Shown here: piece after piece, positions 4,654 through 49,077 of the stretch
How the letters are laid out: every line of letters starts with the position of its first letter
How positions within the stretch are numbered: position 1 is the stretch's first letter
DNA from: Rebecca billardiae RCC1528
Taxonomy: Eukaryota > Protista > Haptophyta
Length of the DNA: 64,000 nucleotides
Direction of reading: 5' to 3'
Assembly (NCBI GenBank): GCA_965240325.2
Contig: OZ251236.1
Coordinates: forward strand, 248,001 to 312,000
The notes under the pieces: generated by a model
The model's database searches: none
The model's input: the letters and a program-made list of their open reading frames with translations, nothing else
Told to the model about the DNA's origin: nothing
Position numbers and translations under genes: made by a program

Positions 4654-7600
4654 TCACGACCTGCTGGCCGCGAGCCGCTCGGCGAGCAGCGTGCCCTGGC
4701 CGGCCAGGGGCTCGAGGAAGAGCAGCTTGAGCACGAGGCAGGCCGCCCAGACGAGCATCACCTGCTCGCGCCAGAGGGCGGGGTCGCGCAGCCGGCTGCC
4801 CAGCCGCTCGCCGACGATCGAGAGGCCGAGCAGCGCGACGATGAGCACGGCGGCGGCGGCGAGGTGGGCGGCCCACACGAGCTTGCGCTTCCACGCCTTG
4901 GGCTTGTTGGCCCACCAGTTGGCCTGCTGCAGCTGGCTGCGCGAGAGGCGCACGCGCTTCTGCACGCGCTGCTGCGTCAGCGGGCTGGTGGCCTCCTGCG
5001 ACGCGTCGTACGCGGCCCCGGCGGCGCGGATGGCGATGTCCGGTGCGGCGATCACCTGCGCCTGCGTCACCGGCGTGTCCGACTCGAACGGCGGCCAGTA
5101 CACGGCCGTGATCATCTTCGCGTACTTGCGCTTGCCGCCGCTCCCGTCGCCGTCGCCACGCAGCCGCGCGCCGAACGTCGTCTCGACCTCGGCGCGCAGC
5201 GCGGGCGCGGCGCGGTACACCGTCTCGACCTGCACGAAGCGCACGTCCGGCAGCTCGCCCTCGCCAAGCTCGATGTGCACCTCGCCGAGGTCCTCGTCAG
5301 CCCCGCGGGTCACCTGCGTGAACAGCTCCTGGATGATCGACGGCCGGTTGCGCATGCTCAACTCGCGCTCCGCGCGCGCCTCGCGCGCAGCCGCGCCTGC
5401 CACGAAGAAGCCGACCATGTGCTCGTCGTGCATCGGGATGGAGACGAGCGCCTCCTCGGGCAGCTCGAGGCGCATCGTGCCGGGCGCCACCGAGCCGCGC
5501 CGCGGCGCCGAGTTGCCGCCGGCGCGCTCAGGCCGCACGCGCTCGCTCAGGTTGTCAGCGGTGACGTTTGCGAGGCTGAAGCTGCGCGTGAGCGAGTGCT
5601 TGAGGCCACCGGGGCCGTCCCGGCCCACGCGCGACATGCCCGTCGGGCGGACGTACAGAAGGCGCTGCCGGCCGCCCTGCGCGCGCGCGCTGTTGGCCGC
5701 GCCGCTTGCCGAGCTGTCCCTCGAGGGCGCGCGGTGCATGCCGCCGGCGGTGGCGCCTCCCGCCGCCTGCGGCACGTTGTGCGCGTACGTGCGCGTCGCA
5801 CCGGTGCCGCCCTCGGCGGCATCCGCGCCCACCGGCTGGCGGAGCGCGCGCTGGCGCTCCTCCTCCGTGAGCGTCTCACCCCGGCGCGCGCGCAGCAGCC
5901 CGCTCCGCTTCGCCGCCCACACGCTCAGCTGCTTGAAGACGAACGTGGCGGGGAACGAGGCGCCGAGCCCGGCGAGCGCGGCAAGCCCCAGCCAGAGCAG
6001 CCGTGCGTCGACCGCCTGGCCGAGCACGAGCGAGATGGCGAGGATCTCGACGAGCGTCGAGTTGAACTGGGCCATCAGCCGCTGCGTCGCCGTCATCGGC
6101 TCGCCCGGCAGGCGCACGAGCCACGAGGTGACCATCGAACGCCGCAGCACGTTGGTGAGCACGCGCCACGCGATCGATGTGCGCGCGAGGTGCATCCACC
6201 CGGGCACGCGCGGCTCAACGTCCACGCGCCGGTCCACGACGCGCGCGACCAAGTGCAGCCCGGCGTACAGCGCGACCAGGACGCACACCACGACCACGCC
6301 CCTGCGAGGCGGCGTGCGACGGCGAAGGGCGGCGGGCGGGCGGTGAGCGCGAGCTGAGGATGGCGCACAGCGCTGCTGCGCCGCGCGTGCGCACTGGCGC
6401 GCACCAGTAGTTGGCGGCGAGCCGCTCGGCGAGGGCGCCAATGCCGCCCTGCTCTCCGGAGTCCGACTGGGTGCGAGCGGCCGTCGTCGACTCCTCGATC
6501 GGTGCGGACGGCGGCGGGCTCGAGACGATCGGGTCCACGCCCTCCTGCTGCGCGCCCGCGAGCTCGCTCTGCGACGCCTCCGGATCGATGGAGCCGTCGG
6601 CCACGCCCGCAACCAGCTCGGTGCCGCGCTCCTGCGTGACGCGCGCCACCTCGCCGAGCGCAGCCGTGATGGCGGCCGCGCCACGGTTGCTCGAGATCGC
6701 CTGTGACAGCGCCGGGCGGCGTGGCGCGATGGGTGCTACGCGTCAGCGCGCGGGCGCGGCCTCGGGTGCGCCGGCACCGCGGAAGGGCGCCGCGCACGCG
6801 CGCGACAGGCGTCGCGGCGCGCGCAGTCACCGTCTGGGCAGCGGCGGCGACACCGTCGAGCGCGGCCTTCATCACGGCGATCGCCGCGGCCGTGCGGTTG
6901 GTCGCGTTGCCCACGAGACTGGACGGGTCCACGGCCGCGCTCACGACCGTCTCGAGCGTGCTTTGCTCCTGCGTGACGCCGCGCGCGCGGGCAGCCGCGT
7001 GCGGCGGGTGAGAGCGAGCGCGGGCGCGCGCGGCGCCCGCAGTCGCGCGCGGCGCGCGCACGGCCAGGCGCGGCGGGTGGCGGCGGGCGAGGCAGGCGCG
7101 GGCGCGCACCGAGAGCACCGACAGCAAGGGCAGGCTCGGCGCGCTGCTGTTCCCCGCACTGCCGCCGTCCTCGTCGACCGGCGGCGCGGTGTCGACCATC
7201 TCCCGCCCGCGCTCAGTGAGGACGGTCGCGAGCGCGCGCATCACGGCCTCGGCCTTCTCCTCGGCGTCCTCCTCCGCCCCGTCCTCCGGGGACGCGCTGG
7301 TGCGCGCGACTGCGCGGCCAATCTCCACGGCCTGCATCACGACCGACGCCGTCTGCGTGAGCGCGCTCACCGTCTTGATCGACAGCTCGCGCTGCTCCGC
7401 CGTCACGCCCGCGCCGTCCGACTGCGAGAGCGCGAGGAACGGGTCATACTGGTAGACGGACGCCGTGCCGGTCAGCCCGCCCAGCCCGAGGGAGACGAGG
7501 AGGTCGCGCTCCGCGGTCGGGCTCGTGGGGGCGTTGGCGAGCAGCGTGGTGAGCGGCGTGAGCACCGTGGCCACGCCGCGCGTCTCGAAGGCCACGGTCG

Positions 7601-10600
7601 GCTGGAGGCCTGTCGTGATGTCCACGCAGCCAGGCGTGCCGATGCGCAGCTTGACGCGCATCGCACGCCGCTCCGCGTCAGACAGCCCCGCCAGAGTGTC
7701 CTCCGAAAAGGTGTAGTACCCGTTCTCCGCGCCGGTGATGTTGGACGGCTCCGTGGACGGGTCGTGCCGCCCGTCGTTGTCCAGGTCGAGGTACACGGTG
7801 CAGCCGCGGAAGTAGCCGTCAAAGGCGTGGCCGCACACGGGAGCCAGGCCGTCGGCGCAGGTGCGCTGGCCCGGAGCAGCGCACCCCGAGCCGGTGCAGC
7901 CGGCGGGCGGCGAGCTGGGCGGCGGCGGCGAGGGCGGCGGGCTCGGCGGCGGCGTTGGGGGTGGCGACGGCGGCGGGCTCGGTGGTGGGCTGGGCGGCGG
8001 GCTGGGCGGCGGCGGCGGCGGGCTGGGCGGCGGGCTGGGCGGCGGCAATGGCGGCGGGCTGGGCGGCGGCGGGCTGGGCGGCGGGCTGGGCGGCGGGCTG
8101 GGTGGTGGCGACGGCGGCGGCGACGGCGGCGGCGGGCTGGGCGGCGGTGATGGCGGCGGGCTCGGTGGCAGTGATGGCGGCGGGCTGGGCAGCGGCGTTG
8201 GCGGCGGCGAGGGCGGCGGGCTCGGCGGCGGGCTCGGTGGCGGGCTCGGCGGCGGGCTGGGCGGCGGGCTCGGCGGCGGCGAGGGCGGCGGGCTCGGTGG
8301 CGGCGATGGCGGAGGGGAAGGCGGCGGGCTCGGCGGTGGCGAGGGCGGCGGGCTCGGCGGCGTGCTGGGCGGCGGGCTGGGCGGCGGGCTGGGCGGCGGG
8401 CTGGGCGGCGGCGAGGGCGGTGGGCTGGGCGGCGGGCTGGGCGGCGGGCTTGGCGGCGGCGAGGGCGGCGGGCTCGGCGGTGGCGACGGTGGCGGCGACG
8501 GTGGCGGGCTTGGAGGCGGGCTGGGCGGCGGGCTGGGCGGCGGGCTTGGCGGCGGCGACGGTGGTGGCGAGGGCGGCGGGCTCGGCGGCGGGCTCGGTGG
8601 TGGCGATGGCGGCGGCGATGGTGGCGGCGATGGCGGCGGGCTGGGCGGCGGGCTCGGCGGCGGCGATGGCGGCGGGCTCGGTGGCGGAGACGGCGGCAGG
8701 CTGGGCGGCGGGCTTGGCGGCGGCGACGGTGGTGGCGAGGGCGGCGGGCTCGGCGGCGGGCTCGGTGGTGGCGATGGCGGCGGCGATGGTGGCGGCGATG
8801 GCGGCGGGCTGGGCGGCGGGCTTGGCGGCGGCGATGGCGGCGGGCTTGGTGGCGGGCTGGGCGGCGGGCTTGGCGGCGGCGACGGAGGCGGGCTCGGCGG
8901 TGGCGACGGTGGCGGCGACGGTGGCGGAGAGGGCGGCGGGCTGGGCGGACGTGACGGCGGAGGGCTCGGCGGTGGCGATGGCGGCGGGCTCGGCGGCGGC
9001 GGCGATGGCGGCGGCGATGGCGGCGGCGATGGCGGCGGGCTTGGCGGCGGCGGCGGCGAGGGTGGCGGCGAGGGTGGCGGCGAGGGTGGCGGGCTCGGCG
9101 GCGGTGACGGCGGCGGGCTGGGTGGTGGGCTGGGCGGCGGGCTGGGGGGTGGCGATGGCGGTGGGCTCGGTGGCGGCGACGGTGGCGGGCTGGGCGGCGG
9201 CGATGGCGGTGGGCTCGGCGGCGGGCTGGGCGGCGGCGGCGAGGGCGGCGGGCTGGGTGGCGGGCTGGGCGGCGGGCTTGACGGCGGTGACGGAGGCGGG
9301 CTCGGCGGTGGCGACGGTGGCGGCGACGGTGGCGGAGAGGGCGGCGGGCTGGGCGGACGTGACGGCGGAGGGCTCGGCGGTGGCGATGGCGGCGGGCTCG
9401 GCGGCGGCGGCGATGGCGGCGGCGATGGCGGCGGCGATGGCGGCGGGCTTGGCGGCGGCGGCGGCGAGGGTGGCGGCGAGGGTGGCGGCGAGGGTGGCGG
9501 GCTCGGCGGCGGTGACGGCGGCGGGCTGGGTGGTGGGCTGGGCGGCGGGCTGGGGGGGGGCGATGGCGGCGGGCTCGGTGGCGGCGACGGTGGCGGGCTG
9601 GGCGGCGGCGATGGCGGCGGGCTCGGCGGCGGGCTGGGCGGCGGCGGCGAGGGCGGCGGGCTTGGTGGCGGGCTGGGCGGCGGGCTTGACGGCGGTGACG
9701 GAGGCGGGCTCGGCGGTGGCGACGGTGGCGGCGACGGTGGCGGAGAGGGCGGCGGGCTGGGCGGAGGTGATGGCGGAGGGCTCGGCGGTGGCGATGGCGG
9801 CGGGCTCGGCGGCGGCGGTGATGGCGGTGGCGATGGCGGCGGCGATGGCGGCGGGCTTGGCGGCGGCGGCGGCGAGGGTGGCGGCGAGGGTGGCGGCGAG
9901 GGTGGCGGGCTCGGCGGCGGTGACGGCGGCGGGCTGGGTGGTGGGCTGGGCGGCGGGCTAGGGGGGGGCGATGGCGGCGGGCTCGGTGGCGGCGACGGTG
10001 GCGGGCTCGGCGGCGGCGATGGCGGCGGGCTCGGCGGCGGGCTGGGCGGCGGCGGCGAGGGCGGCGGGCTGGGTGGCGGGCTGGGCGGCGGGCTGGGCGG
10101 CGGTGACGGAGGCAGGCTCGGCGGTGGCGACGGTGGCGGCGATGGTGGCGGAGAGGGCGGCGGGCTGGGCGGACGTGACGGCGGAGGGCTCGGCGGTGGC
10201 GATGGCGGCGGGCTCGGCGGCGGCGGTGATGGCGGCGGCGATGGCGGCGGCGATGGCGGCGGGCTTGGCGGCGGCGGCGGCGAGGGTGGCGGCGAGGGTG
10301 GCGGCGAGGGTGGCGGGCTCGGCGGCGGTGACGGCGGCGGGCTGGGTGGTGGGCTGGGCGGCGGGCTGGGGGGGGGCGATGGCGGCGGGCTCGGTGGCGG
10401 CGACGGCGGCGGGCTCGGCGGCGGCGATGGCGGTGGGCTCGGCGGCGGGCTGGGCGGCGGCGGCGAGGGCGGCGGGCTGGGTGGCGGGCTGGGCGGCGGG
10501 CTTGGCGGCGGTGACGGAGGCGGGCTCGGCGGTGGCGACGGTGGCGGCGACGGTGGCGGAGAGGGCGGCGGGCTGGGCGGAGGTGACGGCGGAGGGCTCG

Positions 10601-13600
10601 GCGGTGGCGATGGCGGCGGGCTCGGCGGCGGCGGCGATGGCGGCGGCGATGGCGGCGGCGATGGCGGCGGGCTTGGCGGCGGCGGCGGCGAGGGTGGCGG
10701 CGAGGGTGGCGGTGACGGCGGCAGGCTGGGTGGTGGGCTGGGCGGCGGGCTGGGGGGCGGCGACGGTGGCGGGCTGGGCGGCGGCGATGGCGGTGGGCTC
10801 GGCGGCGGGCTGGGTGGCGGCGGCGCGGGCGGCGGGCTGGGTGGCGGGCTGGGCGGCGGGCTTGGCGGCGGTGACGGAGGCAGGCTCGGCGGTGGCGACG
10901 GTGGCGGCGACGGTGGCGGAGAGGGCGGCGGGCTGGGCGGACGTGACGGCGGAGGGCTCGGCGGTGGCGATGGCGGCGGGCTCGGCGGCGGCGGCAATGG
11001 CGGCGGCGATGGCGGCGGCGATGGCGGCGGGCTTGGCGGCGGCGGCGGCGAGGGTGGTGGCGAGGGTGGCGGCGAGGGTGGCGGGCTCGGCGGTGGTGAC
11101 GGCGGCGGGCTGGGTGGTGGGCTGGGCGGCGGGCTGGGGGGTGGCGATGGCGGCAGGCCCGGTGGCGGCGACGGTGGCGGGCTCGGCGGCGGCGATGGCG
11201 GTGGGCTCGGCGGCGGGCTGGGCGGCGGCGGCGAGGGCGGCGGGCTGGGTGGCGGGCTGGGCGGCGGGCTTGGCGGCGGTGACGGAGGCGGGCTCGGCGG
11301 TGGCGGCGGTGGCGGCGACGGTGGCGGAGAGGGCGGCGGGCTGGGCGGAGGTGACGGCGGAGGGCTCGGCGGTGGCGATGGCGGCGGGCTCGGCGGCGGC
11401 GGTGATGGCGGCGGCGATGGCGGCGGCGATGGCGGCGGGCTTGGCGGCGGCGGCGGCGAGGGTGGTGGCGAGGGTGGCGGCGAGGGTGGCGGGCTCGGCG
11501 GCGGTGACGGCGGCGGGCTGGGTGGTGGGCTGGGCGGCGGGCTGGGGGGTGGCGATGGCGGCAGGCTCGGTGGCGGCGACGGTGGCGGGCTCGGCGGCGG
11601 CGATGGCGGTGGGCTCGGCGGCGGGCTGGGCGGCGGCGGCGAGGGCGGCGGGCTGGGTGGCGGGCTGGGCGGCGGGCTTGGCGGCGGTGACGGAGGCGGG
11701 CTCGGCGGTGGCGACGGTGGCGGCGACGGTGGCGGAGAGGGCGGCGGGCTGGGCGGAGGTGATGGCGGAGGGCTCGGCGGTGGCGATGGCGGCGGGCTCG
11801 GCGGCGGCGGCGATGGCGGCGGCGATGGCGGCGGCGAGGGCGGCGGCGAGGGCGGCGGCGAGGGTGGCGGCGGCGGCGAGGGCGGCGGCGAGGGCGACGG
11901 GGGCGGCGAGGGCGGCGGCGAGGGTGGCGGCGGCGGCGAGGGCGGTGGCGAGGGTGGCGGCGAGGGTGGCGGCGGCGGCGAGGGCGGCGGCGAGGGTGGC
12001 GGCGGTGGCGAGGGCGGCGGCGAGGGCGACGGCGGCGGCGAGGGCGGCGGCGAGGGTGGCGGCGGCGGCGAGGGCGGCGGCGAGGGTGGCGGCGAGGGCG
12101 GCGGCGGCGGCGAGGGCGGCGGCGAGGGCGGTGGCGACGGGCACTCGGCAAGAGTGCTGAGGTCCGGGTTGAACTTGGTGTTGCTCGCGAAAGGCGTGAG
12201 CGCGCAGAAGTCACTGCCGTCGTAAAACCTGTGATGCAGTGAGGGGGGAGGGGGCGCGGGTGGGGCGGGGAACGCGTTGGCCATCAACCCTGCCAGCGCG
12301 TGGGGGCCGACGATGCTGCCACCGTGCGGAAGACTGCAAGGCTCCTCAGGTGGACACGCCCTCTTGAGCAGGCGAGCAGCCCAGGCGGCAGGCAGAACGC
12401 AGCTGGCTGGCGTGTGGGGGCGCGCGTGCGCAGGCACACATACAATCCGCTGGAGGACAAAGCAGTCAGCTGCAACACCTCTGTTGGCATGGCGCCGCCG
12501 AGCGAGTTGGAGTTGAGATACCTGTCACTCGTGTGGTGGGAGGAGCGCCGGGTGGCAGCACGCATAACAATGCACGTCAGGTTCCAAGCGGTGTGCATGC
12601 GCCACACGCGGGGAGAGGGAAGTGGTGCGATCTCTTGGGGTCGTTGGTGCGCGCTGCTGCGCGCACAAGAACTGCATGCTCGCCATTGCGCCCACTTCCG
12701 AGGGCAGGCTGCCTGTGAGCGAGTTGAAGTGGAGACGCCTGTCACGCGTGTGATGGGAGGAGCGCCGGGTGGCAGCACGCATAACAATGCACGTCAGATT
12801 GCACGCGGTGTGTGTACGCCACACGCGGGGGGCGGAGAGTGATGCAACCTCTGGGGGCGGTTGGTGCTCGCTGCTGCGCGCACAGTTGAGTCATGCTCGT
12901 CATTGCGCCCACTTCCGAGGGCAGGCTGCCTGTGAGCGAGTTGAAGTTGAGCCACCTGTCACGCGTGTGGTGGGAGGAGCGCCGGGTGGCAGCACGCATA
13001 ACAATGCACGTCAGATTCCAAGCGGTGTGCATGCGCCACGCGTGGGGGGAGGAGAGTGGTGCGATCTCTGGGGGCGGTTGGTGCTCGCTGCTGCGCGCAC
13101 AAGAACTGCATGCTCGCCATTGCGCCCACTTCCGAGGGCAGGCTGCCTGTGAGCGAGTTGGAGAAGAGAAACCTGGCACGCGTGTGGTGGGAGGAGCGGC
13201 GGGTGGCAGCACGCATAACAATGCACGTCAGCTTCCATGCGGTGTGCATGCGCCACGCGTGGGGGGAGGAGAGTGGTGCGATCTCTGGGGGCGGTTGGTG
13301 CTCGCTGCTGCGCGCACAGCCACTGCAAGCTCGCCATTGCGCCCACTTCGGTAGGGATGCTCCCGACGAGAGCGTTTCCGTCGAGAAACCTGCGACCAGG
13401 CAGCAGCATGAGGGGGGGATGCCATCAGCCAAGGCAGAGGTGACCAGATCGTCCGCTGGTGGCGCGCAAGAAGGCGTATGCCGCGCAGAAAAGCACGTCG
13501 TACACTTTGGGCACATTGACCATGTAGCCGACCTCGGTGGGTATCGTGCCTGTCTTGCCAGCACCCCTGTACGCGCTGCGCTCGGTCGTTTCCAAGCGGG

Positions 13601-16072
13601 CAGCGCGCAAAGCATGATGACGCGCAGGGCGGGCAGGCCAGCGCGGGCGGTGTGTAAGCGCAACGACGCTGAGCGCGCACGTGCGCGAGCGCGCGCGCGC
13701 GGAGGGGAAGGGGTTGCTCTGCAGCGCGGTCACAGCGACGCACATGTCCCTAGCAATGCCATTGCACGCGAGCTCGTTGAATGTGCCCGAGTCAGGGAAG
13801 CACTGGGGGTAGTCTGTCAGCATCGCATCGCGCAGGCTAGATGATGCGGCCGTCTCGACCTGGGCGATCAGCGCGCAGGAGATGAGCATTGCTTTCGCGA
13901 GCGGAACGTGGCTCGTGCACGAAGTCCGCAGCCGAGGGAGGCCCAAAGGGGAGACACGTCGACAGGAAACCACGTGGTGGTAGAAGAACGTCAGCAAAAA
14001 GCATGCGACGAGCATGCGCAGGCAACCACCAATGACCAGTTCGTGCCGTGGTGAGATGGTCTTCTGCTCCTTGTTGATCATGCAAGCAAGCGCGTGCCAT
14101 GGAGGCGCGTTGGTCTTCTGCTGCTTGGTCGCCGCCTCGGCCGGCATGCCCGTGAGCGCGTGCGGCGGTGGCGCGTTGGTCTGGTGCTGCTTGGTCGCCG
14201 CGTCGGCCGGCGTGCACGTGAGCGCGTGCGGCGGCGGCGCGTTGGTCTTCTGCTGCTTGGTCGCCGCCTCGGCCGGCATGCCCGTGAGCGCGTGCGGCGG
14301 TGGCGCGTTGGTCTGGTGCTGCTTGGTCGCCGCGTCGGCCGGCATGCCCGTGAGCGCGTGTGGCGGCGGCGCGTTGGTCTGGTGCTCCGTCATCAGCGTG
14401 TCGGCCGGCGTGCCCGTGAGCGCGTGCGGCGGCGGCGCGTTGGTCTGGTGCTCCGTCATCATCAGCGTGTCGGCCGGCGTGCCCGTGAGCGCGCGCGGCG
14501 GCGGCGCGTTGGTCTTCTGCTGCTTGGTCGCCGCCTCGGCCGGCATGCCCGTGAGCGCGTGCGGCGGTGGCGCGTTGGTCTGGTGCTGCTTGGTCGCCGC
14601 GTCGGCCGGCGTGCACGTGAGCGCGTGCGGCGGCGGCGCGTTGGTCTTCTGCTGCTTGGTCGCCACGTCGGCCGACATGCCCGTGAGCGCGTGCGGCGGC
14701 GGCGCGTTGGTCTTCTGCTGCTTGGTCGCCACGTCGGCCGACATGCCCGTGAGCGCGTGCGGCGGCGGCGCGTTGGTCTTCTGCTGCTTGGTCGCCACGT
14801 CGGCCGGCATGCCCGTGAGCGCGCGCGGCGGCGGCGCGTTGGTCTTGTGCTCCGTCATCATCAGTGTGTCGGCCGGCATGCCCGTGAGCGCGTGCGGCGG
14901 CGGCGCGTTGGTCTGGTGCTCCGTCATCAGCGTGTCCGCCGGCGTGCCCGTGAGCGCGTGCGGCGGCGGCGCGTTGGTCTGGTGCTCCGTCATCATCGTG
15001 TCGGCCGGCGTGCCCGTGAGCGCGTGCGGCGGCGGCGCGTTGGTCTGGTGCTCCGTCATCATCGTGTCGGCCGGCGTGCCCGTGAGCGCGTGCGGCGGCG
15101 GCGCGTTGGTCTGGTGCTCCGTCATCATCGTGTCGGCCGGCGTGCACGTGAGCGCGTGCGGCGGCGGCGCGTTGGTCTTCTGCTGCTTGGTCGCCACGTC
15201 GGCCGACATGCCCGTGAGCGCGTGCGGCGGCGGCGCGTTGGTCTTCTGCTGCTTGGTCGCCACGTCGGCCGACATGCCCGTGAGCGCGTGCGGCGGCGGC
15301 GCGATGGTATGGTGCTCCGTCATCAGCGCGTCAGCCGGCGTGCCCGTGAGCGCGTGCGGCGGCGTCACGTAGGTCTTGTGCTGCTTGGCCGCCGCGTCCG
15401 CCGCGTCGATCGGCATGCCCGCGAGCTCGCGCGGCGGCGGCGCGAGTGCGCGCTGTGGCGACGTGTCGTCAATCTTCGTCGGCATGGGGAGTGAGGCGCC
15501 ATCGTGCAGCGCGGAAGGCGGAGCCGATCCGGCGCCGTCGTCGCCTGGTCCGGCCTCCTGGCCTGCGAATCAAATGGCGGGCGAAAAACAGCAGCAGGGA
15601 AAAGCAAAACAAAAAGGCGGATCAAATGCAGCGCGCAGATTGCCAGATACCGCCGACGCGCGGCGCGGCGCCCGCGGGGGCGAGCGCGCGGCGCGCCCTC
15701 GGCATGCGCGCTTCGCGCCACGCACACGCACCTGCATCAAGCGTGATCGTCAGGCCCTGGGTCTTGTTGAAATCGGTGTTGGTCGGCGCGCCCGAGAGCG
15801 CGGGCGCGGGCGCGTCGCCGCTATTGCGCCCCTCAGCCGCCACCGCTCGGCCGGCGGCGCTGACGGCGCGTGACGACAGCGTGCGCTGCGCCGGGGGGCG
15901 ATCGGCGAGGTGCATGGCACGGTCTGCCGAGCCCCAGGCCGCGTGCGTCAGGTCGGCCGGGTCGATGCGCGCACAAATGCCGCCGCCGTGCGCAGCGGCA
16001 TGCGCGAGCACGGCGATGAGCGCGATGCCCACGGCGCCGACGATCGAGCTGAGCTTCGCCGCGCGAGTTCCG
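4654..16072 (-). CDS. Giant multi-exon membrane protein: hydrophobic segment, 22-aa repeats, 6 plant-type LRRs, (SPPP)n extensin-like stalk, bacterial-type Ca-binding module and polycystin-1-like TM region; start codon probably further upstream (~16.2-16.35 kb)
   Basis: Exons that join in frame (top-bottom): 16072-15732, 15562-~13721, 13575-13504, 13389-13318, 13172-13101, 12955-12884, 12738-12667, 12521-12444, 12228-7110, 6968-6831, 6700-6405, 6301-4654. All junctions are GT-AG except the ~13721 donor, which is probably GC and least certain. LRR consensus is LxLxxNSLTGSLPSEVGAMxSxxxL. Confidence 0.75.
7913..12140 (-). repeat. Coding (Ser-Pro3-4)n repeat of ~1400 codons with a 408-bp higher-order period
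   Basis: Translation of ORF 6093-12437. The marker GACGGAGGC recurs at 8881, 9289, 9697, 10105, 10513, 10873, 11281 and 11689, spaced 408 bp except one 360-bp interval. Confidence 0.95.
12522..13389 (-). repeat. Tandem array of four 217-bp units, each a 72-nt LRR exon plus a 145-nt intron
   Basis: Introns 12522-12666, 12739-12883, 12956-13100 and 13173-13317 are near-identical, each with a GTGCGC donor, a CTGAC branch-like motif and a CAG acceptor on the minus strand. The exons are exactly 72 nt and phase 2/2. Confidence 0.92.
14094..15440 (-). repeat. Coding minisatellite, ~20 copies of 66 bp (some 69 bp): (K/Q)TNAPPPHALTG(M/T)PAD followed by AATKQQ or TMMTEH
   Basis: A 66-bp period is visible in the DNA (GCGCGTTGG at 14105, 14171 and onward) and in ORF 13425-15485. 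Confidence 0.95.
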
Positions 16073-26163: not shown

Positions 26164-26205
<42 letters not shown>

Positions 26206-26377
26206 ACTCTCATCTCGCTCTCTCTCATACTACTTGCTCACGATGCTGCTATAATAATTGCATATATATATAGTTTTAAAATTAAGCATATTATAATTCA
26301 TCAGCATCGTCAATCAATAGTATATATATATATATTCAGAGACAGAGAGTAGAGATGAGAGAGAGAGAAAGAGAGAG
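26135..26377. repeat. (CT)n and oppositely oriented (GA)n microsatellites flanking AT-rich DNA between convergent genes
   Basis: CT runs at ~26135-26226, (TA)n runs, and GA runs at ~26338-26377. Confidence 0.85.
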
Positions 26378-26401
26378 TTTATTCGAGTATAGTCTACTTC
26401 A

Positions 26402-28432
26402 TCACTTGCCACCGCCGATGCCGCCGTAGAAGCGGCGGCATCGTTTGCGCGCGCACTCGGCCGCGACGGCGCGCTTGACTGCGCCCGAGCCCTGCGCAAA
26501 CACGACGGCGTGCTCGGTGATGGCGCCCTCAAAGTCGAGCCGTCCCGCGCGCAGCTCGAGCCACCCGTCGAGGTGGGCGAACTGCGCGCGCATCTGCTGC
26601 AGCCGCTCGGTCGGGGTCGCCGCGCGCCGGCCGATTCGGCGCAGCGCCTGCTGCGCGACGCCGCCGATGTCCTTCGTCTGGTCTCTGGTCGCCGCCTCGC
26701 CGCGCGCCTTGGCGGTGAAGACGGACTTGAGGTCCCAGGTGAGCGCGAGCACGACGCGCAGCCCGGGCGCGGGCCCCGCCGCGCTGCTGCCCGAGCTCGA
26801 GCCCGCCGAGCCGCCCGGCGTCCCTCCGCCGCCCTCCGCCGCGCGCCGCGCCGCGTCGACCAACGGCGCGATGAGCGAGAGCACCCACCGCAGCAGCGCC
26901 TCGTCTCTCGTCGTGAAGAGAATTGTGAGCGGGCAGCCGGAGCACGGGTCGTACCACTGCAGCGCGTCGATGAGGTAGTTGCACGCCGAGCCCGAGCCGA
27001 CCAGCACCGCCGGCGCGCACCGCTCCAGCGCGAGCTTCACGGCCTCCGACATCTCGCCGCGCACCGGGCCCCACGCGTGGAGCGCGAGCGGCGCGCCGGC
27101 CGGCGCGTCGGCAATGCGGCGCGTGTGCGGCAGCGCGTCGAGCGTCGAGAGCGGCATGGCGCGCCTGGCGCGGAAGACGCGCATCACCACGCCCACCGTC
27201 CACGCCCTCCGCGCGCCGCCGCCCGCCGCCTTCCCCGCCGCGCCGAGCGCGATGCCGCGGCGGTTCTCGAATGCGGTGAACACGTGCGCGAGCTCGAGCG
27301 CGGACGATTCGCACAGCCGCAGCCGGTAGTCCGGCCCGACCGTGTCCGAGCGGTACGGGTGGGCCCAGTACACGACGCAGTACTGCGCCGAGATCGGCTC
27401 GCGGTGCACGACCGCCGGCGTGTGCCGCCGGAACACCGCGTGCCACGCCTTGTCCGCCAGCCAGAGCGCGAAGACAGGCGCGTTGAGCGCGATCGAGTGC
27501 GGGTGTGTGTGCCGGCGCACAATGTCGAAGAAGTAGAGAACGAAGAGCGCGCGGTGCACGTGCACGCCGACGTGGTAGTGCGTGGCGAGCCAGCGCGTCG
27601 AGAGCGGCGCGAGCACGCCGAGCAGCACCGTCATCTCCACGATGCGCCACACGTCGTCCAGCTGCAGCGACATGGTGCGGCTGTGCGGGTCGGCATCCTT
27701 CATACCGGGGGGCTTGCGCTCGGAGAGCGGCCACTCAAACGCGCCGACGACGACCCGCGCGGCCCAGCCGTGGGTGAGGCACGGCAGCAGGATGCTCCAC
27801 ACGTGCACGAGCGTGAGCACGCACAGCGCGATCCCGTTCCACTTGTGCAGCCGCCGGTTCGCCGTGACGATGTCCGAAGTGTCGACGAGCCGAGCGAGCG
27901 CGCGCGACGACGCGAGCCACTCGAGCGGCGCGCGCATCATCGTGAGCATGAGCAGGTTGAGCGCGACGATGGAGACGCGGCCCGAGACACGCGCGATCAC
28001 GTCGTACGCGACCACGCTCCACGGCCCCGGCTTGTACCCGACCAGCCGGTCCGAGCCCGCCGAGCCCGAGCCGATCATGTGCGTCTGCCGCGGCCACACG
28101 TTCCAGACGAAGCGGTCGGCCACGGCGAGGGCGGTGACCGCGAGGTAGATCGCCCACACCACGGCCTCGTAGGACAGCGTCGGGCGGCTCCGCTCGCGCG
28201 CGCGCGCCGGCACGCTCGAGCGGAACTCGTCGACGCTGATGGCGACTTCGCACGGCGTGATCGGCGGCGCGTCCGAGTCATCGCGCGAGTCGCGCACGTC
28301 GCGCGAGTCGGTCGGGGCGGTGCGGCCGGAGAAGGCGTGGGCGAGGAGGCCGAGCATCGCCCTCGCGCCCTGCGGACGGGGGGGCGCCAGCTTGCCCGCG
28401 ACCTCGACGTCGTTGCGGCTGCCTTGCTCCAT
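26402..28432 (-). CDS. Ferric reductase / NADPH-oxidase-like transmembrane flavocytochrome
   Basis: TM helices carry paired His (HKWNGIALCVLTLVH; HRALFVLYFFDIVRRH). FAD-site-like HVFT (cf. HPFT), WGP and NAD(P)H-site-like VLVGSGSA. ATG at 28432 chosen. Confidence 0.75.
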   Translation of the reverse strand: MEQGSRNDVEVAGKLAPPRPQGARAMLGLLAHAFSGRTAPTDSRDVRDSRDDSDAPPITPCEVAISVDEFRSSVPARARERSRPTLSYEAVVWAIYLAVTALAVADRFVWNVWPRQTHMIGSGSAGSDRLVGYKPGPWSVVAYDVIARVSGRVSIVALNLLMLTMMRAPLEWLASSRALARLVDTSDIVTANRRLHKWNGIALCVLTLVHVWSILLPCLTHGWAARVVVGAFEWPLSERKPPGMKDADPHSRTMSLQLDDVWRIVEMTVLLGVLAPLSTRWLATHYHVGVHVHRALFVLYFFDIVRRHTHPHSIALNAPVFALWLADKAWHAVFRRHTPAVVHREPISAQYCVVYWAHPYRSDTVGPDYRLRLCESSALELAHVFTAFENRRGIALGAAGKAAGGGARRAWTVGVVMRVFRARRAMPLSTLDALPHTRRIADAPAGAPLALHAWGPVRGEMSEAVKLALERCAPAVLVGSGSACNYLIDALQWYDPCSGCPLTILFTTRDEALLRWVLSLIAPLVDAARRAAEGGGGTPGGSAGSSSGSSAAGPAPGLRVVLALTWDLKSVFTAKARGEAATRDQTKDIGGVAQQALRRIGRRAATPTERLQQMRAQFAHLDGWLELRAGRLDFEGAITEHAVVFAQGSGAVKRAVAAECARKRCRRFYGGIGGGK

Positions 28433-28700
28433 GTCTGCCGGTGATGCGTTGTGCGTTGCAGAACGCACAGACGAGCGCAAGGCCGACGCGAACCGGCGCA
28501 CGCCGCAACGCGACCAAGATTGAATAGAAACTCGAGACCTGCCACTGCGCGTGAATCATGGTTGATGAATAAGCACCCACAGCACGCGCCTGACGCCAAC
28601 ATACTGGGGAGCCAGCCTTGACGAAACACTTGACAGACATCAGACACTCGGCCGTGTGACTCCGACTCCGCATGACTTAGCAATCAGCTCCATCACGCGA

Positions 28701-31562
28701 TCAAGCAATGAGCCGTGGCCTGTCTTGAGGGCGGTGCGAGCGCGCCGCTTCCCAGCCGGCACCGCTCTCAGCGCCGCTGTCGGAGCCGGACAGCGCCGAG
28801 CCGTCGGACTCGGCACTGAGGGTCGAGCTCGCGCCGTCCATGGCCGCGACGTGGCTCACGTGACCGACCGATGAGACAGCGCACGCGGGGCTCGGCGCGC
28901 GCGCCGCCGCGCTGCCGTCGCCGGGCGTCGAGCTGGACCGATCGGCGGCGGCGCCACCGAGAGTGCCGCTGCCGCCGTGCGGGGCCGCGGGCGCCGGCGA
29001 CGACGTCCGGCCCGAGGGTGTGCCCCCGAGCGCGCGCCTCGCGCGCGCAGCGCCAGAGGCAGAGCCCAGCTCGCCGCCGCCACCGCCCGGCAGCTTGAAG
29101 CCAAGCAACTCGCGCGGCGACAGCGCGCTCGCTGCGGCGGCGAGCGCGTCCGCGCGCGGCGAGGACACGGCGGCGGCGGCGCGGCCGCCGGCACTGCTGC
29201 TCAGCAACGGCGGCGGCGGCCCGACGCTGTGCGCGCCAGCGTCGCGTGCGTGCGCGCCGGCCACGCGCCCCAGCCGCGAGCGGCGCGCGGGCGCCGGCGC
29301 CGCGCCCGCGCCGCGCGCCGCGTGCGCCGGCGGCTCTGCTCGCCGGCGCCGCGTCGACGGCGGCGGCACCGGCGAGGTGGGCTGCGCCGAGGCGGCTGCT
29401 GCTGCCTGCGCCATCGGCGGCGCGTCCGGCGCCGTCGCCCCGCCGCCGCCCGCCGCCGCCTTGCGCGCGCGACCGCGCGTCGGCGGTGTGGCCTGTACCG
29501 CCCTGAGAACAGGGCGGCGCGCCGGCGCGCCGGCGGCGGGCTCGGCGGCGGGCTCGGCGGCGGGCTCGGCGGCGGGCTCGGCGGCGGGCTCGGCGGCGAG
29601 CTCGGCGGCGGGCTCGGCGGCGGGCTCGGCGGCGGGCTCGGCGGCGGGCTCGGCGGCGGGCTCGGCGGAGCGAGGCACGCCCGCCGCAAGCGGCGCACGC
29701 TCCGCCGCCGCCGAGTGCGCCGCATCCGGGGCGCGGTCTGCGCGGCTCGCGGCGCCGCCGTCCGCGTTGTCGGCGGCGCCCAACCTCTCACACGAGGCCG
29801 GCGTCGGCCGACTGACCGGCGGTGGCGGCTCGGCGGACGGCGCGGCCGCCGGGGCGGCGGCGTCGAGGTCGGCGGCGCCAAGCCTCGCGCACGCCGTGAG
29901 CAGCCGGTCAACTCGCCCTGCGGAGGCGTGGCGCCGCACGGCGCGGCGGCGGCGCAAAGGCGTGAGCGGCGCCGCGCCTCGCCGCATGGCCGGTGCGCGC
30001 GCAGCGCCGGCCGGCGACAGGGTGGGCGGGCGCGCGCGCGTGGGCTACGCGGCGCCGGGCGCGCGCGCGGCGCGCAGTCGCGCACCCGCCGCGCGCCGCA
30101 GCCGCGCGCTCGGGCCCTTGGGGTCGTCGTCGTCGTCGGCGAGATCGCGCGCGCCGCGCGCCGCGGCGAGCGCTCGCGCCGCCAGCCGCAGCTGTGGCAG
30201 CCGCAGCCGATGTTTCTGCGGAAAAAAGAAAAGCGGAAAAAAGAAAAAAGGAAAGTAAATAAGGACGAAGGGAATCGTGATGTCAAATAAGCGAAAGCGC
30301 GGCAGAGGCGCGGGCATGCGTGCGCGTGAGGCGCGGAGGCGCACTGCGCACGCGCGCGCGCCGCGAGCCGCGCGCGCGCCGCGCGCGCACCTCGCGGGAC
30401 AGCGCCTGGCGCGCGGCCGCGCGCGCGCCCGGCGGCGCGAATTGGCCGTCGCGCGCGCGGCGCGCGCGACCTGGCGCTGCCAGCTTAGCCAGCGCGAGCG
30501 TCCGCAGCAGCAGCTCCGCCTCGAGTGCGGCGCACAGCGCGCCGGCGGGGTCGTGCGACGCCAGCTGCTCGGGCAGCGCGCCCCAGCCCGCGCCGCCGCC
30601 GTCGGCCGCCGCCGCCGCCGCGCAGCGCTCGCTTAAAAGCTCGCCCGCGCACGCGGCCGCGCGCGCGTCGGCGCCGCAGAGCGCCGCAAGCGCGTAGGCT
30701 TGCGTCATCGCCGCGTGGCAGAGGGTGCGCGCGTGCAGCTCGGCGGCGGCCTCGGAGGCGACAGCGGCGGGGTCGGAGGCGGCCGGCGGCGGCTGCTCGT
30801 CGCAGAGCGCGGCGCACGCCGCCTCCGCGGCGCGGTCGTACGCGCGCGCGCACGCGTCCCTCTGGCCACCGACGCCTGAGCAGTGCACGCTGCCGCTGCC
30901 GCCGGCGGCGCCGCCGCCGCCGCCGCCGCCGATCATCAGAAGCGGCGTGCACGGCGAGGGCGGCGAGCGCGCGCGCCGGCCGGCGCGGCCGGCGCCGCCG
31001 CCCGTGCTGAGCGCAGCGGCGCGCATCGCGCGCGTGAGCGGCATCCAGAGCTCGTCACAGCAACGCTCGCACAGCGCAGCCGCCGCCGCGCCCGCCGCGG
31101 CCGCGCGCGCGCCGCCGCGCGCCGGCGGCACCACCGCCTCATGCGCCCACGCGCCGCCGCGCGCTGCCGGCGGCAGCGGCGTCGTGCGAGCGCGCGCGAG
31201 CGCGCGCGCCGCCGGCGAGCCGCTGGCGGGTGTGCGGGGTGGCGAGATCGCGCCGGAGATTGCGCCGCGCGGCGAGATTGCGCGGGAGATTGCGCGGCGC
31301 GGCGAGATCGCGCCGGAGATTGCGCCGCGCGGCGAGATTGCGCGGGAGATTGCGCCGCGCGGCGAGAGCGCGGGCGGTGTGCCTTCCGCTGCGCTCGAGT
31401 CAGCTGCCCACGCGGCCGCCGCGGCGGCGGAGCCCGCCGCGAGGCAGTGCGCCGGCATCGACGCGCGCCGCCGAGCGCCGCCGCCGCTGCCGCCCGCCGC
31501 CGGCACGGCAGTCGCCGCGCGCAGCCGCGCTGAGCGCGAGCGCACGCCCTCCCAGCCGCACA

Positions 31563-33813: not shown

Positions 33814-34069
33814 CGTGCGTGGCCAGCACACGCCTGCCACTTGCTGGCCTTGGATCGAGCGTTCAACCGGCTGGAATGAGATGCCCGTTTTGACGGGCTG
33901 GCTTCGTCGGCGGCTGCGTCCGGCCGTTCGGCGCGAGCAAAGCTCTCCGGATCAGTTTTCAAGTTGGGCGGCCCGGTGGCGAACTGGCTTTGACGCGCGT
34001 CGGTGAGTGCGCGCGCGGTGCGCACCAGCGTGCACTCCGGCCCAGCGGCAGGGCACCGCGCAGGCGAGG

Positions 34070-35152
34070 ATGGGCGACGAGGCAGCGGCGCGCTTGTGCC
34101 GGCTGGCACTAGAGCTGGGAGCCGAGCAGGGCGACGCGCAAGCGCAGCGCGAGCTGGGCGCGTGCTACGAGATAGGCGAGGGTGTGCAGCAGGATTTGGG
34201 CGAGGCGGCACGCTGGTATCGGCTGGCGGCCGAGCAGGGCGATGCTGGAGCGCAGCACAATCTGGGCCGGTGCTACGCACAGGGCCAAGGTGTGCAGCAG
34301 GATTGGGGCGAAGCAGTGCGCTGGTACCGGCTGGCAGCCGAGCAGGGCCAGGCTGCAGCGCAGTGCAATCTGGGCGTGTCCTACGAGAGTGGCGAGGGCG
34401 TGCAGCGGGACAGGGGCGAGGCCGCGCGCTGGTATCGGCTGGCGGCAGAGCAGGGCAATGCGCGAGCGCAGTGCAATCTGGGCATTTGCTACGCGCTCGG
34501 CGAGGGTGCGCAGCAGGATTGGGGCGAGGCGGTGCGCTGGTACCGGCTGGCAGCCGAACAGGGCGATGCTGTAGCGCAGCACAATCTAGGCGCATCCTAC
34601 GCACATGGCAATGGTGTGCAGCAGGATTGGGGCGAGGCGGTGCGCTGGTACCGGCTGGCAGCCGAGCAGGGCGATGCTGTAGGCCAGCACAATCTGGGCA
34701 TGGCCTACATTTCCGGAGACGGCGTGTCGAGGGATGTCCGCGAGGCGGCGCGCTGGCTCCGCCTGGCCGTTGACGGCGGGTTCGCACCCGCGCACTTTGT
34801 GCTGGGGACGCTGACGCTGGCGGGTGCGGGAGTGGAGCGTGACGTGGAGGAGGGCGCGCGGCTGCTGCACCGTGCCCAAGAGCTCGATCCCGACCTCAGA
34901 GATGCAGCGTGCGATGCACTGGCCAAGAGAGCTGGAGATCCCGTGGTGGTCTCCCAGTGCTGCACCACCTGCGGACGGACGGGCCGTGGTCTGAAGAAGT
35001 GCGAGCGGTGCCACGTGGCGGTCTTCTGCTCGCGTGAGCACCTGCGCAGCTCGTGGAAGGTGCACAAGCCCCACTGCCACGCGTGGTGCGCGCAGGCAGC
35101 AGGTGAAGCCTCGTCTGCCGCAGCTCGGACCCCGCCTGATGAGCCTACTTGA
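34070..35152 (+). CDS. SEL1-like (36-aa) repeat protein with C-terminal MYND-type zinc finger
   Basis: About 7 repeats of AQxNLGxxYxxGxGVxQDxGEAxRWYRLAAEQG, followed by CTTC...KKCERC...FCSREH....WKVHKPHC. Intronless. Confidence 0.92.
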   Translation: MGDEAAARLCRLALELGAEQGDAQAQRELGACYEIGEGVQQDLGEAARWYRLAAEQGDAGAQHNLGRCYAQGQGVQQDWGEAVRWYRLAAEQGQAAAQCNLGVSYESGEGVQRDRGEAARWYRLAAEQGNARAQCNLGICYALGEGAQQDWGEAVRWYRLAAEQGDAVAQHNLGASYAHGNGVQQDWGEAVRWYRLAAEQGDAVGQHNLGMAYISGDGVSRDVREAARWLRLAVDGGFAPAHFVLGTLTLAGAGVERDVEEGARLLHRAQELDPDLRDAACDALAKRAGDPVVVSQCCTTCGRTGRGLKKCERCHVAVFCSREHLRSSWKVHKPHCHAWCAQAAGEASSAAARTPPDEPT

Positions 35153-46947: not shown

Positions 46948-49077
46948 ATGCCGCACGACGACCAGCTTGAGGCTGCTGCTCGCATGAACGAACTGGCGGA
47001 GGAGGGCGGGGACGGCCGCGCGCCGCGCCGCTCGGCGCGCCGCTCGCCGCCCTCCGCCTCGCTGCGCGCCGGCGCCGGGCACAAGCGCTCCGCCTCGCAC
47101 CACGCGCACCCGCGCACGTCGCCGCCGCTCGAGCTGCTGCAGCGTTACGACATGTCGGCGCACACGGTCGGGCGCGGGCACTTCTCGGTGGTGAAGCTCG
47201 GCGTGGACCGGCGGACGAACGAGCGCGTCGCGATCAAGGTGATCGACAAGCGCACGCTCCACTCCGAGGCGCGGCTGCGCACCGAGGTCGCCGTGCTGCA
47301 GCGCGCCGGCCGGCACGAGCACATCGTGCAGCTGCTCGACGTCTTCGAGAACGCGGAGGCGCTGTTCCTCGTGATGGAGCTCGTGCAGGGCGGCGAGCTG
47401 TTCGGCCGGATCGTCGCCAAGACGCGCTACTCCGAGGCCGAGGCGCGCGAGGCCATCGCGCAGATCGCCTCCGCACTCGAGTACCTGCACCGGCGCGGCG
47501 TCGTGCACCGCGACCTCAAGCCAGAGAACCTTCTCTACGCTTCGGCGGCGGAACATTCGCCGCTGAAGATCGCCGACTTCGGGCTGGCGCGCGCGTTCGA
47601 GCCAGCCGACGGCGCGAGGCTCTCCTCGCCCTGCGGCACGCCCGGCTACGTCGCGCCCGAGGTGCTTACCCACAATGGGTACGACGGCGCGGTCGACCTA
47701 TGGAGCCTCGGGGTGATTCTGTATGTGTTGCTATGCGGCCACCCGCCCTTCTACGCGCAGACGACGGCGAAGCTGTTCGACAAGATCAAGCGCGCCGAGT
47801 ACGGCTTCCCCGACGCGCAGTGGCGGCATATCTCCGACGACGCCAAGGACCTCGTCCGCCACCTGCTCACCCTCGAGCCCGCGCATCGGCTGACGGCGCG
47901 CGAAGTGTTGCAGCATCGGTGGGTGCGGGTCGCGGGCGCGGCGAGCGCGGAGCGCGTGCTGACCTCGCCGCAGGAGCTGGCGTACGCGTACTCGCAGCGG
48001 CTGTGGGGCATGTCGCTCGAGCTCTCCACCGCCGTGCACCGCCTCGGCAACTTCGCCGCGCTGCCCGCCATCCCGATGGGCGCCCTGTGGGCGCGGCGCC
48101 GGTCCGAACAGCCCGCGGCGCAGCAGCAGCGCCCGGCGCGCGGGGCGCGCCGCTCGGACGCGAGCGGCGGCGGCGGCGCCGAGGACGGCGGCGGCGGCGG
48201 CGGCGGCGCCCCGGCGCCGGCCGCGGCACCCGCCTCTGCCTTCGCCCTGCCGCAGCCCTCGCTGCTCGCGCCGCCCTCGCTGTCCACCGCGTGCGCGTGG
48301 GCCGCGTCGCCCGCGCGCCGCGCGCCGCCCGCCGAGGCGCCGCCGCCGCGCGGCACGTCGACGCGAGATACAATCTCGATCGTGCCGCCGCCGGAGGCTA
48401 CGCGAGATACAATCTCGATCGTGCCGCCGCCGGAGGCTACGCGAGATACAATCTCGATCGTGCCGCCGCCGGAGGCGCACGTGGGCGGGGCGCCCGCGGC
48501 GGACGGCGGCGTGGCCGCGTGGCACACGCCGCCGCGCGCGCCGCCGCGCGGCGCGCAGCCGGCGGCGTCGGCCCTGGCCCTGGCGCAGCTGGTGCCCGCA
48601 GCTGCCGGGCCGGCGCCGCCGCCGCCGCCCCGGCGCGAGCCGCCCCGCGCGGCCGAGCCGCCGCGCGCGCCGCGCGCCGAGCCGGCCGCCGTTGTCACCC
48701 CGCCGGCGGCGCCGGTGCCAGCCGCGCCCCGCGCGGCCATGCCGCCCTCGCTCCGGGCCGTCGGCCGCTCCGAGAGCCTGCCCACGCAGCTGCTGCGCAT
48801 GTCCCTCTTCGAGGCCTGCGAGCACGGTGGGTCCGCGGCGCTGGGGGCGGCCGGAGGAGCGGCGGACGGCGGCGGCGGCGGCGCGGACGGCTCGCCGCGC
48901 GCGCGGATGCGCCGCGTGAACAGCCTGCAGCACCAGAGCTCCGCGGCGGCGGCGGTGGTCTGCCGGTCGGGCGGAGGGCTCGACTGCGCCACGGCGAGCG
49001 CCGAGGAGAGGCAGAGGCGCGCGGCCGCGTGGCAGCGCGCGGACGGCCAGCAGCATCAGCCCGTGAGCGCAGCCTGA
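46948..49077 (+). CDS. CaMK-family (CaMKI-like) Ser/Thr protein kinase with Pro/Ala-rich C-terminal extension
   Basis: GRGHFSVV, VAIKVIDK, HRDLKPEN, DFG, CGTPGYVAPE and DLWSLGVILY motifs. Start could be 46948 or 46984. Confidence 0.93.
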   Translation: MPHDDQLEAAARMNELAEEGGDGRAPRRSARRSPPSASLRAGAGHKRSASHHAHPRTSPPLELLQRYDMSAHTVGRGHFSVVKLGVDRRTNERVAIKVIDKRTLHSEARLRTEVAVLQRAGRHEHIVQLLDVFENAEALFLVMELVQGGELFGRIVAKTRYSEAEAREAIAQIASALEYLHRRGVVHRDLKPENLLYASAAEHSPLKIADFGLARAFEPADGARLSSPCGTPGYVAPEVLTHNGYDGAVDLWSLGVILYVLLCGHPPFYAQTTAKLFDKIKRAEYGFPDAQWRHISDDAKDLVRHLLTLEPAHRLTAREVLQHRWVRVAGAASAERVLTSPQELAYAYSQRLWGMSLELSTAVHRLGNFAALPAIPMGALWARRRSEQPAAQQQRPARGARRSDASGGGGAEDGGGGGGGAPAPAAAPASAFALPQPSLLAPPSLSTACAWAASPARRAPPAEAPPPRGTSTRDTISIVPPPEATRDTISIVPPPEATRDTISIVPPPEAHVGGAPAADGGVAAWHTPPRAPPRGAQPAASALALAQLVPAAAGPAPPPPPRREPPRAAEPPRAPRAEPAAVVTPPAAPVPAAPRAAMPPSLRAVGRSESLPTQLLRMSLFEACEHGGSAALGAAGGAADGGGGGADGSPRARMRRVNSLQHQSSAAAAVVCRSGGGLDCATASAEERQRRAAAWQRADGQQHQPVSAA
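48361..48477 (+). repeat. 39-bp coding triplication (TRDTISIVPPPEA)x3
   Basis: Three near-identical copies. Confidence 0.95.

Follow-up and report, generated by a model that had tools for sequence, protein, structure and literature searches.

A tandem array of one-repeat exons in the leucine-rich repeat domain of a predicted haptophyte surface protein

In the 64,000-nt stretch of DNA from the haptophyte Rebecca billardiae RCC1528 that we analysed (contig OZ251236.1, positions 248,001 to 312,000; hereafter the window), one minus-strand gene carries six leucine-rich repeats (LRRs), each on an exon of its own, and the central part of this series is a gap-free tandem array of four 217-nt units, each made up of an exon and an intron. 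Base changes among the youngest exons are crowded into codons for residues that are predicted to be exposed at the LRR domain's concave face, and codons for the structural scaffold are nearly invariant. The interpretation that we favour, with a probability of roughly 0.65, is that the array encodes the LRR tip of an adhesion or receptor protein with a stalk and a membrane anchor, and that this tip was recently enlarged by tandem exon duplication followed by selected divergence of its concave face. Growth of LRR domains in this manner is already known, and the present array is a clean new example of it.

Anatomy of the exon-intron array

Tandem Repeats Finder reports a 217-nt period at positions 12500-13349 (3.9 copies, 89% matches, 0% indels), and a repeat search recovers four copies at a spacing of 217/217/217. 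The coding strand is the minus strand, where each unit comprises a 72-nt phase 2 exon and a 145-nt intron. A preliminary description of this DNA had proposed four such units flanked by two further LRR exons of 72 and 78 nt, and its positions hold to the base. In total there are six LRR exons, five of 72 nt and one of 78 nt, separated by intervals of 114, 145, 145, 145 and 145 nt. All intervening introns follow the GT..AG rule and interrupt the frame in phase 2 (after the second base of a codon). In the direction of the gene, the features are as follows.

13576-13743, minus strand: predicted intron of 168 nt, GTGCGT..CAG, phase 2
13504-13575, minus strand: LRR exon 0, 72 nt; this first repeat is degenerate and has the core GTIPTEVG
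13390-13503, minus strand: intron of 114 nt, not related to those of 145 nt
13318-13389, minus strand: LRR exon 1, 72 nt, of which the last 32 nt or so lie inside the 217-nt array
13173-13317, minus strand: intron copy 1, 145 nt, with 4/145 differences from copy 2
13101-13172, minus strand: LRR exon 2, 72 nt, begins FLFS
12956-13100, minus strand: intron copy 2, 145 nt
12884-12955, minus strand: LRR exon 3, 72 nt, begins WLNF and ends TQ
12739-12883, minus strand: intron copy 3, 145 nt, the most diverged, with 12-19/145 differences from the other copies
12667-12738, minus strand: LRR exon 4, 72 nt, begins RLHF
12522-12666, minus strand: intron copy 4, 145 nt
12444-12521, minus strand: LRR exon 5, 78 nt, of which only the first 22 nt or so lie inside the array
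12229-12443, minus strand: intron of 215 nt, GTATGT..CAG, phase 2; the next exon begins at 12228

Similarity at the 217-nt period sets in within LRR exon 1 (position 13349) and ends within LRR exon 5 (position 12500). Borders placed inside exons are expected if the array arose by unequal crossing-over or slippage between neighbouring LRRs. Pairwise comparison of the 145-nt introns gives 4-19 differing positions and no indels. The near-identity first noted for the copies at 13317-13173 and 13100-12956 amounts to 4 differences in 145 positions, and the remaining pairs differ at 11-19. All four introns have a common donor (GTGCGCGCAG) and near-identical 3' ends, and the donor motif GTGCG is also found at other predicted introns of the same gene. 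The exons can be just as close: those at 13172-13101 and 12738-12667 differ by exactly five bases, all within codons 1-4 (FLFS versus RLHF), again as first described.

The LRR-coding segments are distributed over all three reading frames, and the unspliced open reading frames (ORFs) in the array are all closed by stop codons, so that none crosses it and only splicing can join the segments. When the GT..AG sites are joined, an open frame of 2,433 codons results that runs from an ATG at 15485 to position 7110 without a stop. The LRR region has a G+C content at third codon positions (GC3) of 0.79. The closed unspliced frames and the open joined one argue strongly that the introns are spliced as predicted. 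Once spliced, the LRR domain would comprise 146 residues.

The units have the consensus xLxxNSLTGSLPTEVGAMASMQx, which corresponds to 24 residues per repeat for the five 72-nt exons once the junction codon is counted. When a profile built from the six units was compared with the Protein Data Bank (PDB), it matched the ectodomains of the plant proteins MIK2 (E = 4.9e-14), ERL1 (1.4e-11), FLS2 (2.6e-10) and GSO1 (5.2e-8). The LRX/PEX1 chains 6tme and 6qwn, also from plants, gave E = 0.94-0.96 only. As judged by profile and consensus, the repeats are plant-type 24-residue LRRs with an NxLxGxIPxE-type core, the class to which the preliminary description had assigned them. Two Cys residues precede the first repeat and two follow the last, and no LRRNT-type match was found in Pfam.

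Each intron is located inside the central Leu codon of the xxLxLxx strip, which it splits into two bases and one. A cassette consequently begins with the back half of one strip and ends with the front half of its successor, and never holds a whole strip. The six strips read PK-V-FLDG, QW-L-FLFS, QF-L-WLNF, TQ-L-RLHF, QF-L-YLNS and SG-L-FYDG. The middle four are those listed in the preliminary description, and our reading of them agrees; its picture of one binding strip per cassette does not stand, since the intron divides every strip and the cassette contains two half-strips. Aromatic residues (F, W or Y) make up 11 of the 30 exposed strip residues, or about a third.

Placement of change and origin of the array

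To compare rates of change within the array, we fixed in advance that the five x codons of xxLxLxx would count as exposed, and then examined the three youngest exons. Twelve of the 15 exposed columns are variable, in comparison with one of six columns in the two Leu codons, one of 51 in the scaffold, and 21 of 145 in the introns. The differences are significant by Fisher's test for exposed positions versus introns (p = 2.7e-7), exposed positions versus scaffold (p = 1.1e-9) and scaffold versus introns (p = 0.018). Change has thus been far quicker at the exposed codons than in the introns, and slower in the scaffold, and the concentration of variation at concave-face codons that was originally proposed is borne out. 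Intron identity (87-97%) here serves as an internal neutral clock, relative to which the predicted ligand-facing codons have run faster by a factor of about eight and the scaffold has hardly moved. The array is in this respect an unusually clean snapshot of LRR domain growth.

With the scaffold frozen, the introns drifting slowly and the exposed codons saturated, selection on the concave face would seem to be required. This selection could be diversifying and have acted after recent duplication, or it could have protected old differences from gene conversion. In the interpretation that we favour, each LRR corresponds to one symmetric exon, and unequal crossing-over between adjacent repeats, or replication slippage between them, would recently have multiplied the 217-nt unit of exon and intron. 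The outcome of this amplification would be the four gap-free units, with introns that are only 3-13% different. Selection would then have driven or kept amino acid differences at the five exposed strip positions, either after duplication or despite ongoing gene conversion, with the structural scaffold frozen throughout. The end result would be a short concave binding face, rich in aromatic residues, with no two repeats alike. Two more internal tandem arrays occur in this gene, with periods of 66 nt and of 12 and 408 nt (described below), and repeat expansion is therefore general to this locus rather than specific to its LRRs.

The array might alternatively only look young. Old, diverged repeats could have undergone concerted evolution, with gene conversion homogenizing introns and scaffold while selection shielded the exposed codons. 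Several observations fit this possibility. The last 60 nt are the same in exons 2 and 4, yet their introns differ at 11 of 145 positions; conversely, introns 1 and 2 are separated by 4 differences in 145 positions and the strip codons that flank them by 9 in 24 bases. In four of the six unit pairs, concordant runs are longer than those obtained by permutation (p = 0.002-0.02), and single codons are common to units in a reticulate pattern. However, this history must account for an exact length of 217 nt without an indel and for conversion tracts that avoid about 20 nt on both sides of each intron, which makes it less parsimonious. Four units cannot discriminate between the two histories, both of which call for selection on the exposed residues. 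We regard concerted evolution of an old array as rather unlikely, but as the most serious competitor to recent duplication.

The equal length and high identity of the four introns could also be explained if an introner, a mobile element that creates introns, had inserted at equivalent sites of pre-existing LRRs. Such insertion does not predict that exon and intron are repeated jointly as a 217-nt unit whose borders lie within exons. Terminal inverted repeats and target-site duplications are absent, and there is no further copy in the 64 kb of the window, which holds many other genes. Furthermore, the introns have no match in Rfam, and their folding z-scores (-0.5 to -1.5) are not unusual. These results indicate an ordinary intron that was copied along with its exon. 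We have rejected a mobile origin on the basis of the missing terminal repeats, target-site duplications and other window copies, and consider it extremely improbable.

Tandem repeats are error-prone in assemblies, and the read-through ORFs of the array are absent from short-read Logan assemblies of the same species, as might be the case if the array were an assembly artefact or a decaying, non-functional repeat. Against this, each unit can be told from the others at particular positions, frame is kept in all six exons, no splice site is disrupted, and conservation is higher in the scaffold than in the introns. The GC3 value of the LRR region likewise weighs against it, and decay would not spare 50 of 51 scaffold bases. 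An artefact or a decaying repeat is therefore very unlikely.

A number of points weigh against recent duplication followed by selected divergence in a surface protein, or limit the force of the evidence for it. All splice junctions are predictions from sequence. Pfam searches with single 23-residue units scored nothing, the units being too short, and no homologue of the LRR-bearing ectodomain was detected. Only three to five units exist, depending on the comparison, and the signal of selection consists of about 14 variable exon columns. Some changes occur in runs, such as the seven consecutive bases that close exon 3, and resemble replacement of a patch more than point mutation. The differences are clustered and mosaic, and do not separate selection after duplication from gene conversion of introns and scaffold combined with selection against conversion of the exposed codons. 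Finally, exposed positions were assigned by analogy with solved plant LRRs rather than from a model of this domain.

Host gene, membrane module and genomic setting

The array forms a small part of one minus-strand gene that spans about 10.8 kb (approximately 15485 to 4654). Its other parts are as follows.

13744-15485, minus strand: exon 1, a continuous ORF with its ATG at 15485 and about 20 copies of a 22-residue repeat
7110-12228, minus strand: large exon of 5.1 kb that encodes the LRR C-cap, an SPPP stalk and a domain of about 265 residues
4654-7109, minus strand: downstream exons and introns with approximate junctions; stop codon at 4656-4654

The N-terminal repeats are encoded by a 66-nt tandem array at 14089-15403 on the minus strand, for which Tandem Repeats Finder gives 19.8 copies and a higher-order period of 399 nt. 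The encoded 22-residue repeat (TGMPADAATKQHQTNAPPPHAL type) has an in-frame GC3 of 0.98 and no stops, and no family matched it. It is followed by a hydrophobic helix at residues 483-501 (approximately 14039-13983; Kyte-Doolittle score 2.26) and then by a short Cys-containing stretch that leads to the LRRs. Our choice of start codon and the membrane topology implied by this helix are provisional readings of the sequence.

Beyond the LRRs, the large exon begins with a Cys-containing C-cap (FYDGSDFC...AEC). Directly after it comes the stalk, a 4.2-kb array at 7905-12140 on the minus strand that encodes about 1,400 residues with 319 SPPP motifs, in periods of 12 nt and, at a higher order, 408 nt (10.4 copies). 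The 85% G+C content and strong GC skew of 7905-12140 are accounted for by this coding array. There is one Tyr among some 1,450 Pro- and Ser-rich residues. Between the stalk and the membrane module lies a domain of about 265 residues (7910-7113, minus strand), Cys-rich at first and then helical, with a DLDNDG...GYYTF stretch. It has no Pfam match and no PDB match. A homologue search with residues 1505-1775 of the 2,114-residue ORF found none among the best 8,000 candidates, a weak negative in that Pro-rich words may swamp the search. A single-sequence structural model of this domain (mean predicted local distance difference test score, pLDDT, 43.5) was too poor for use. The gene ends with a C-terminal module (6321-4657, minus strand) that has the character of a multi-pass membrane segment with about five hydrophobic helices. 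None of the N-terminal, post-stalk and C-terminal ORFs belongs to a Pfam family, and no ROC-COR, kinase, NB-ARC or TIR domain was found in them.

Taken as a whole, this architecture points to a membrane-anchored, heavily repetitive surface glycoprotein in which the six LRRs would sit at the far end of the SPPP stalk, followed by the post-stalk domain and the multi-pass membrane module. A role for the ectodomain in binding or adhesion is suggested by this order of parts.

Ten homologues of the C-terminal module were recovered among 1.84 billion representative proteins, all unnamed and derived from Logan or JGI assemblies. One Logan contig (L001, run ERR14847151) is 99.84% identical to window positions 26182-29309, with 3 mismatches and 1 gap in 3.1 kb, and this run is therefore from the same species; public short-read data thus exist for this species, or for another haplotype or strain of it. 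Paralogues of the module are present on three contigs (L002-L004) from ERR14847151 and its companion run ERR14847148, two of which (L003 and L004) overlap with 100% identity. On L002 and L003, the module is located directly behind ORFs with REJ (8.5e-30), TIG (7e-17) and GPS (1e-5 to 3e-9) motifs, and it likewise lies behind a REJ/TIG/GPS ectodomain on a metagenome contig (L005). In the gene studied here, the module instead comes after an LRR-extensin ectodomain, without GPS. Neither an LRR motif nor an SPPP array was found on the module contigs of the same species or on those from other samples (L005-L007). The module has no sequence match in PDB, and Foldseek returned no match at E <= 0.001 for its AlphaFold model (pLDDT 66.9). 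It has the appearance of a membrane anchor or transducer that surface receptors share, and its recurrence behind REJ/TIG/GPS ectodomains fits a surface receptor or adhesin. The combination of plant-type LRRs, a 1,400-residue extensin-like stalk and a REJ/GPS-associated membrane module has no annotated counterpart, and the protein would be a good entry point into the biology of the haptophyte cell surface.

The preliminary description went further and proposed that the array is a diversification device of an immune-like or self/non-self recognition system. In its strongest form, this would mean that the cassettes yield receptor variants through regulated exon skipping, frequent unequal crossing-over or conversion, or somatic rearrangement. 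The geometry allows for this: with equal phases, units can be gained, lost or skipped in frame, the exons are symmetric with lengths (72 or 78 nt) that are multiples of three, and the shared donor and 3' ends keep the frame. Change is concentrated on the predicted binding face, and alternative splicing of such LRR exons has been reported for brown-algal ROCO genes (PMC11378527). However, in-frame skipping and gain or loss of units are equally possible for every LRR gene with symmetric exons, and skipping in this gene would give chimeric strips rather than exchange whole ones, since the intron splits the strip. Differences between repeats within one protein also say nothing about alleles, cells or isoforms, and repeat expansion is common to the whole gene.

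Searches for further cassettes also fail to favour a dedicated device. Use of the 145-nt intron as a query for paralogous arrays or orphan cassettes, which the preliminary description had suggested, yielded none on either strand of the window, and tblastn and blastn searches of the window with the unit returned only the exons of the array itself, all on the minus strand. The window accordingly contains one four-unit array and no second copy of intron or cassette. Orphan, antisense or inactivated cassettes are likewise missing from it, in contrast to the shuffling loci of Ectocarpus (PMC3341825). In two metagenome scans, neither an invariant intron 29-mer nor a wobble pattern for NSLTGSLPSEVGAM had any match. 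A read-through ORF that spans 2.2 array units likewise recovered nothing in a protein search, but missed the window's own sequence as well. No related sequence was thus seen in metagenome contigs or in the protein collection. With a single array and no relic cassettes in the window, and no immune-type signalling domain, we consider a dedicated device improbable and do not retain the immune or self/non-self proposal.

We hold it equally doubtful that the LRR domain serves as the variable tip of a receptor or adhesin on the haptophyte surface, used for example in recognition of gametes, kin, prey or viruses, and acts as a generator of strain- or isoform-level repertoires that evolved independently of the brown-algal and ciliate cases. 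If it did, repeat number and half-strips would differ among strains or among splice isoforms. On present evidence, the array offers nothing testable about adaptive or immune-like diversification in algae beyond the existing brown-algal proposals.

The window has a mean G+C content of about 72% and contains long intron-free ORFs, among them those for a myosin, a kinase and an AAA/CAP-Gly protein; the genome of Diacronema lutheri has a G+C content of 73.25%, and 45% of its genes are single-exon (PMC8379373). At 55216-56835 on the minus strand lies a gene for a fused DUF3593 and DUF2499 protein of plastid or cyanobacterial type. Its best named relatives are from Pavlovales sp. CCMP2436 (61%) and D. 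lutheri (59%), ahead of diatoms, and in a small tree it clusters with these two at 100/100 support. Judged by this one gene and by composition, the DNA probably derives from a haptophyte of the pavlovophyte group. Elsewhere in the window, an ORF at 34007-35149 on the plus strand encodes a protein with a zf-MYND finger at its C-terminus and six Sel1 repeats, which recur in tandem every 108 nt. Short tandem duplications occur at 48361-48476 (39 nt x 3.0, 100%), 2302-2379 (37 nt x 2.1, 100%) and 59829-59930 (51 nt x 2.0, 98%).

Comparison with known LRR systems

The closest parallel in exon design is found in brown algae. In ROCO and other LRR genes of Ectocarpus and Saccharina, one LRR is encoded per symmetric 72-nt exon, exons are shuffled, and positive selection acts on the concave face (PMC3341825, PMC11378527). 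Inactivated or antisense LRR cassettes in introns are a hallmark of the Ectocarpus shuffling loci (PMC3341825). The array described here resembles the brown-algal type I genes in its 24-residue LRR per 72-nt symmetric exon, its repeated exon-intron layout and its capacity for in-frame gain or loss of repeats, and it shares with them an excess of amino acid change on the concave face, measured here in a small sample. The phase of the repeat relative to the exon is different, however. The Ectocarpus exon reads GxxPxxLxxxxxLxxLxLxxNxLx, with the intron between NxLx and GxxP, whereas the exon described here reads xLxxNxLxGxLPxxVGxMxxLxx, with the intron inside the Leu codon of LxxL|xLxxN. This difference in intron position suggests an independent, convergent origin. 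In addition, the present gene has no ROC-COR or kinase domain and, within the window, neither intronic or antisense relics nor clustered paralogues, and its host is haptophyte-like and not a brown alga.

Ciliates provide a second example of fixed-length units. In Tetrahymena LRR genes, exon and intron form units of constant length with phase 2 junction codons, for which unequal crossing-over has been proposed; the exons are 90 nt long (30 residues), number in the tens of thousands over a very large family, and occur in association with a LINE-like element (PMC6564038). Our array has the same plan of a fixed-length tandem unit of exon plus intron, with a junction codon formed from two bases and one. 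It differs in its 72-nt exons, its class of LRR and its extent, which is one four-unit array in the window.

Lamprey variable lymphocyte receptors (VLRs) are assembled from incomplete germline genes that are completed by copying of flanking cassettes. In those receptors a recognition protein varies through its LRR modules, as may also be the case here. In contrast to a VLR gene, however, the present gene is complete and open, its modules are ordinary spliceable exons, and the window contains no flanking cassettes.

At the level of the protein, the nearest likeness is with plants. The LRR-extensins (LRX/PEX) are plant cell-surface proteins in which the LRR domain binds a ligand and the stalk holds the protein in place. 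In the predicted protein, too, an extensin-like domain of Ser-Pro(3-4) type comes after plant-type LRRs. Its stalk is nonetheless about 1,400 residues long and, with a single Tyr, has no Tyr cross-link motifs; it carries 22-residue repeats and a hydrophobic helix at its N-terminus, an extra domain and a C-terminal multi-pass module; and its LRR profile matches LRX only at E = 0.94. The host protein therefore resembles the LRX family and is not a member of it. The ectodomains of MIK2, ERL1, FLS2 and GSO1 belong to the same 24-residue repeat class and are the best PDB matches, but in comparison with plant LRR receptor kinases the present protein has six repeats only, no kinase and a different domain context.

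Three features therefore set this case apart from the systems above: the position of the intron within the repeat, the lineage of the host and the nature of the host protein. With brown algae and ciliates as precedents, it would bring the design of one LRR per symmetric exon to a fourth protist lineage.

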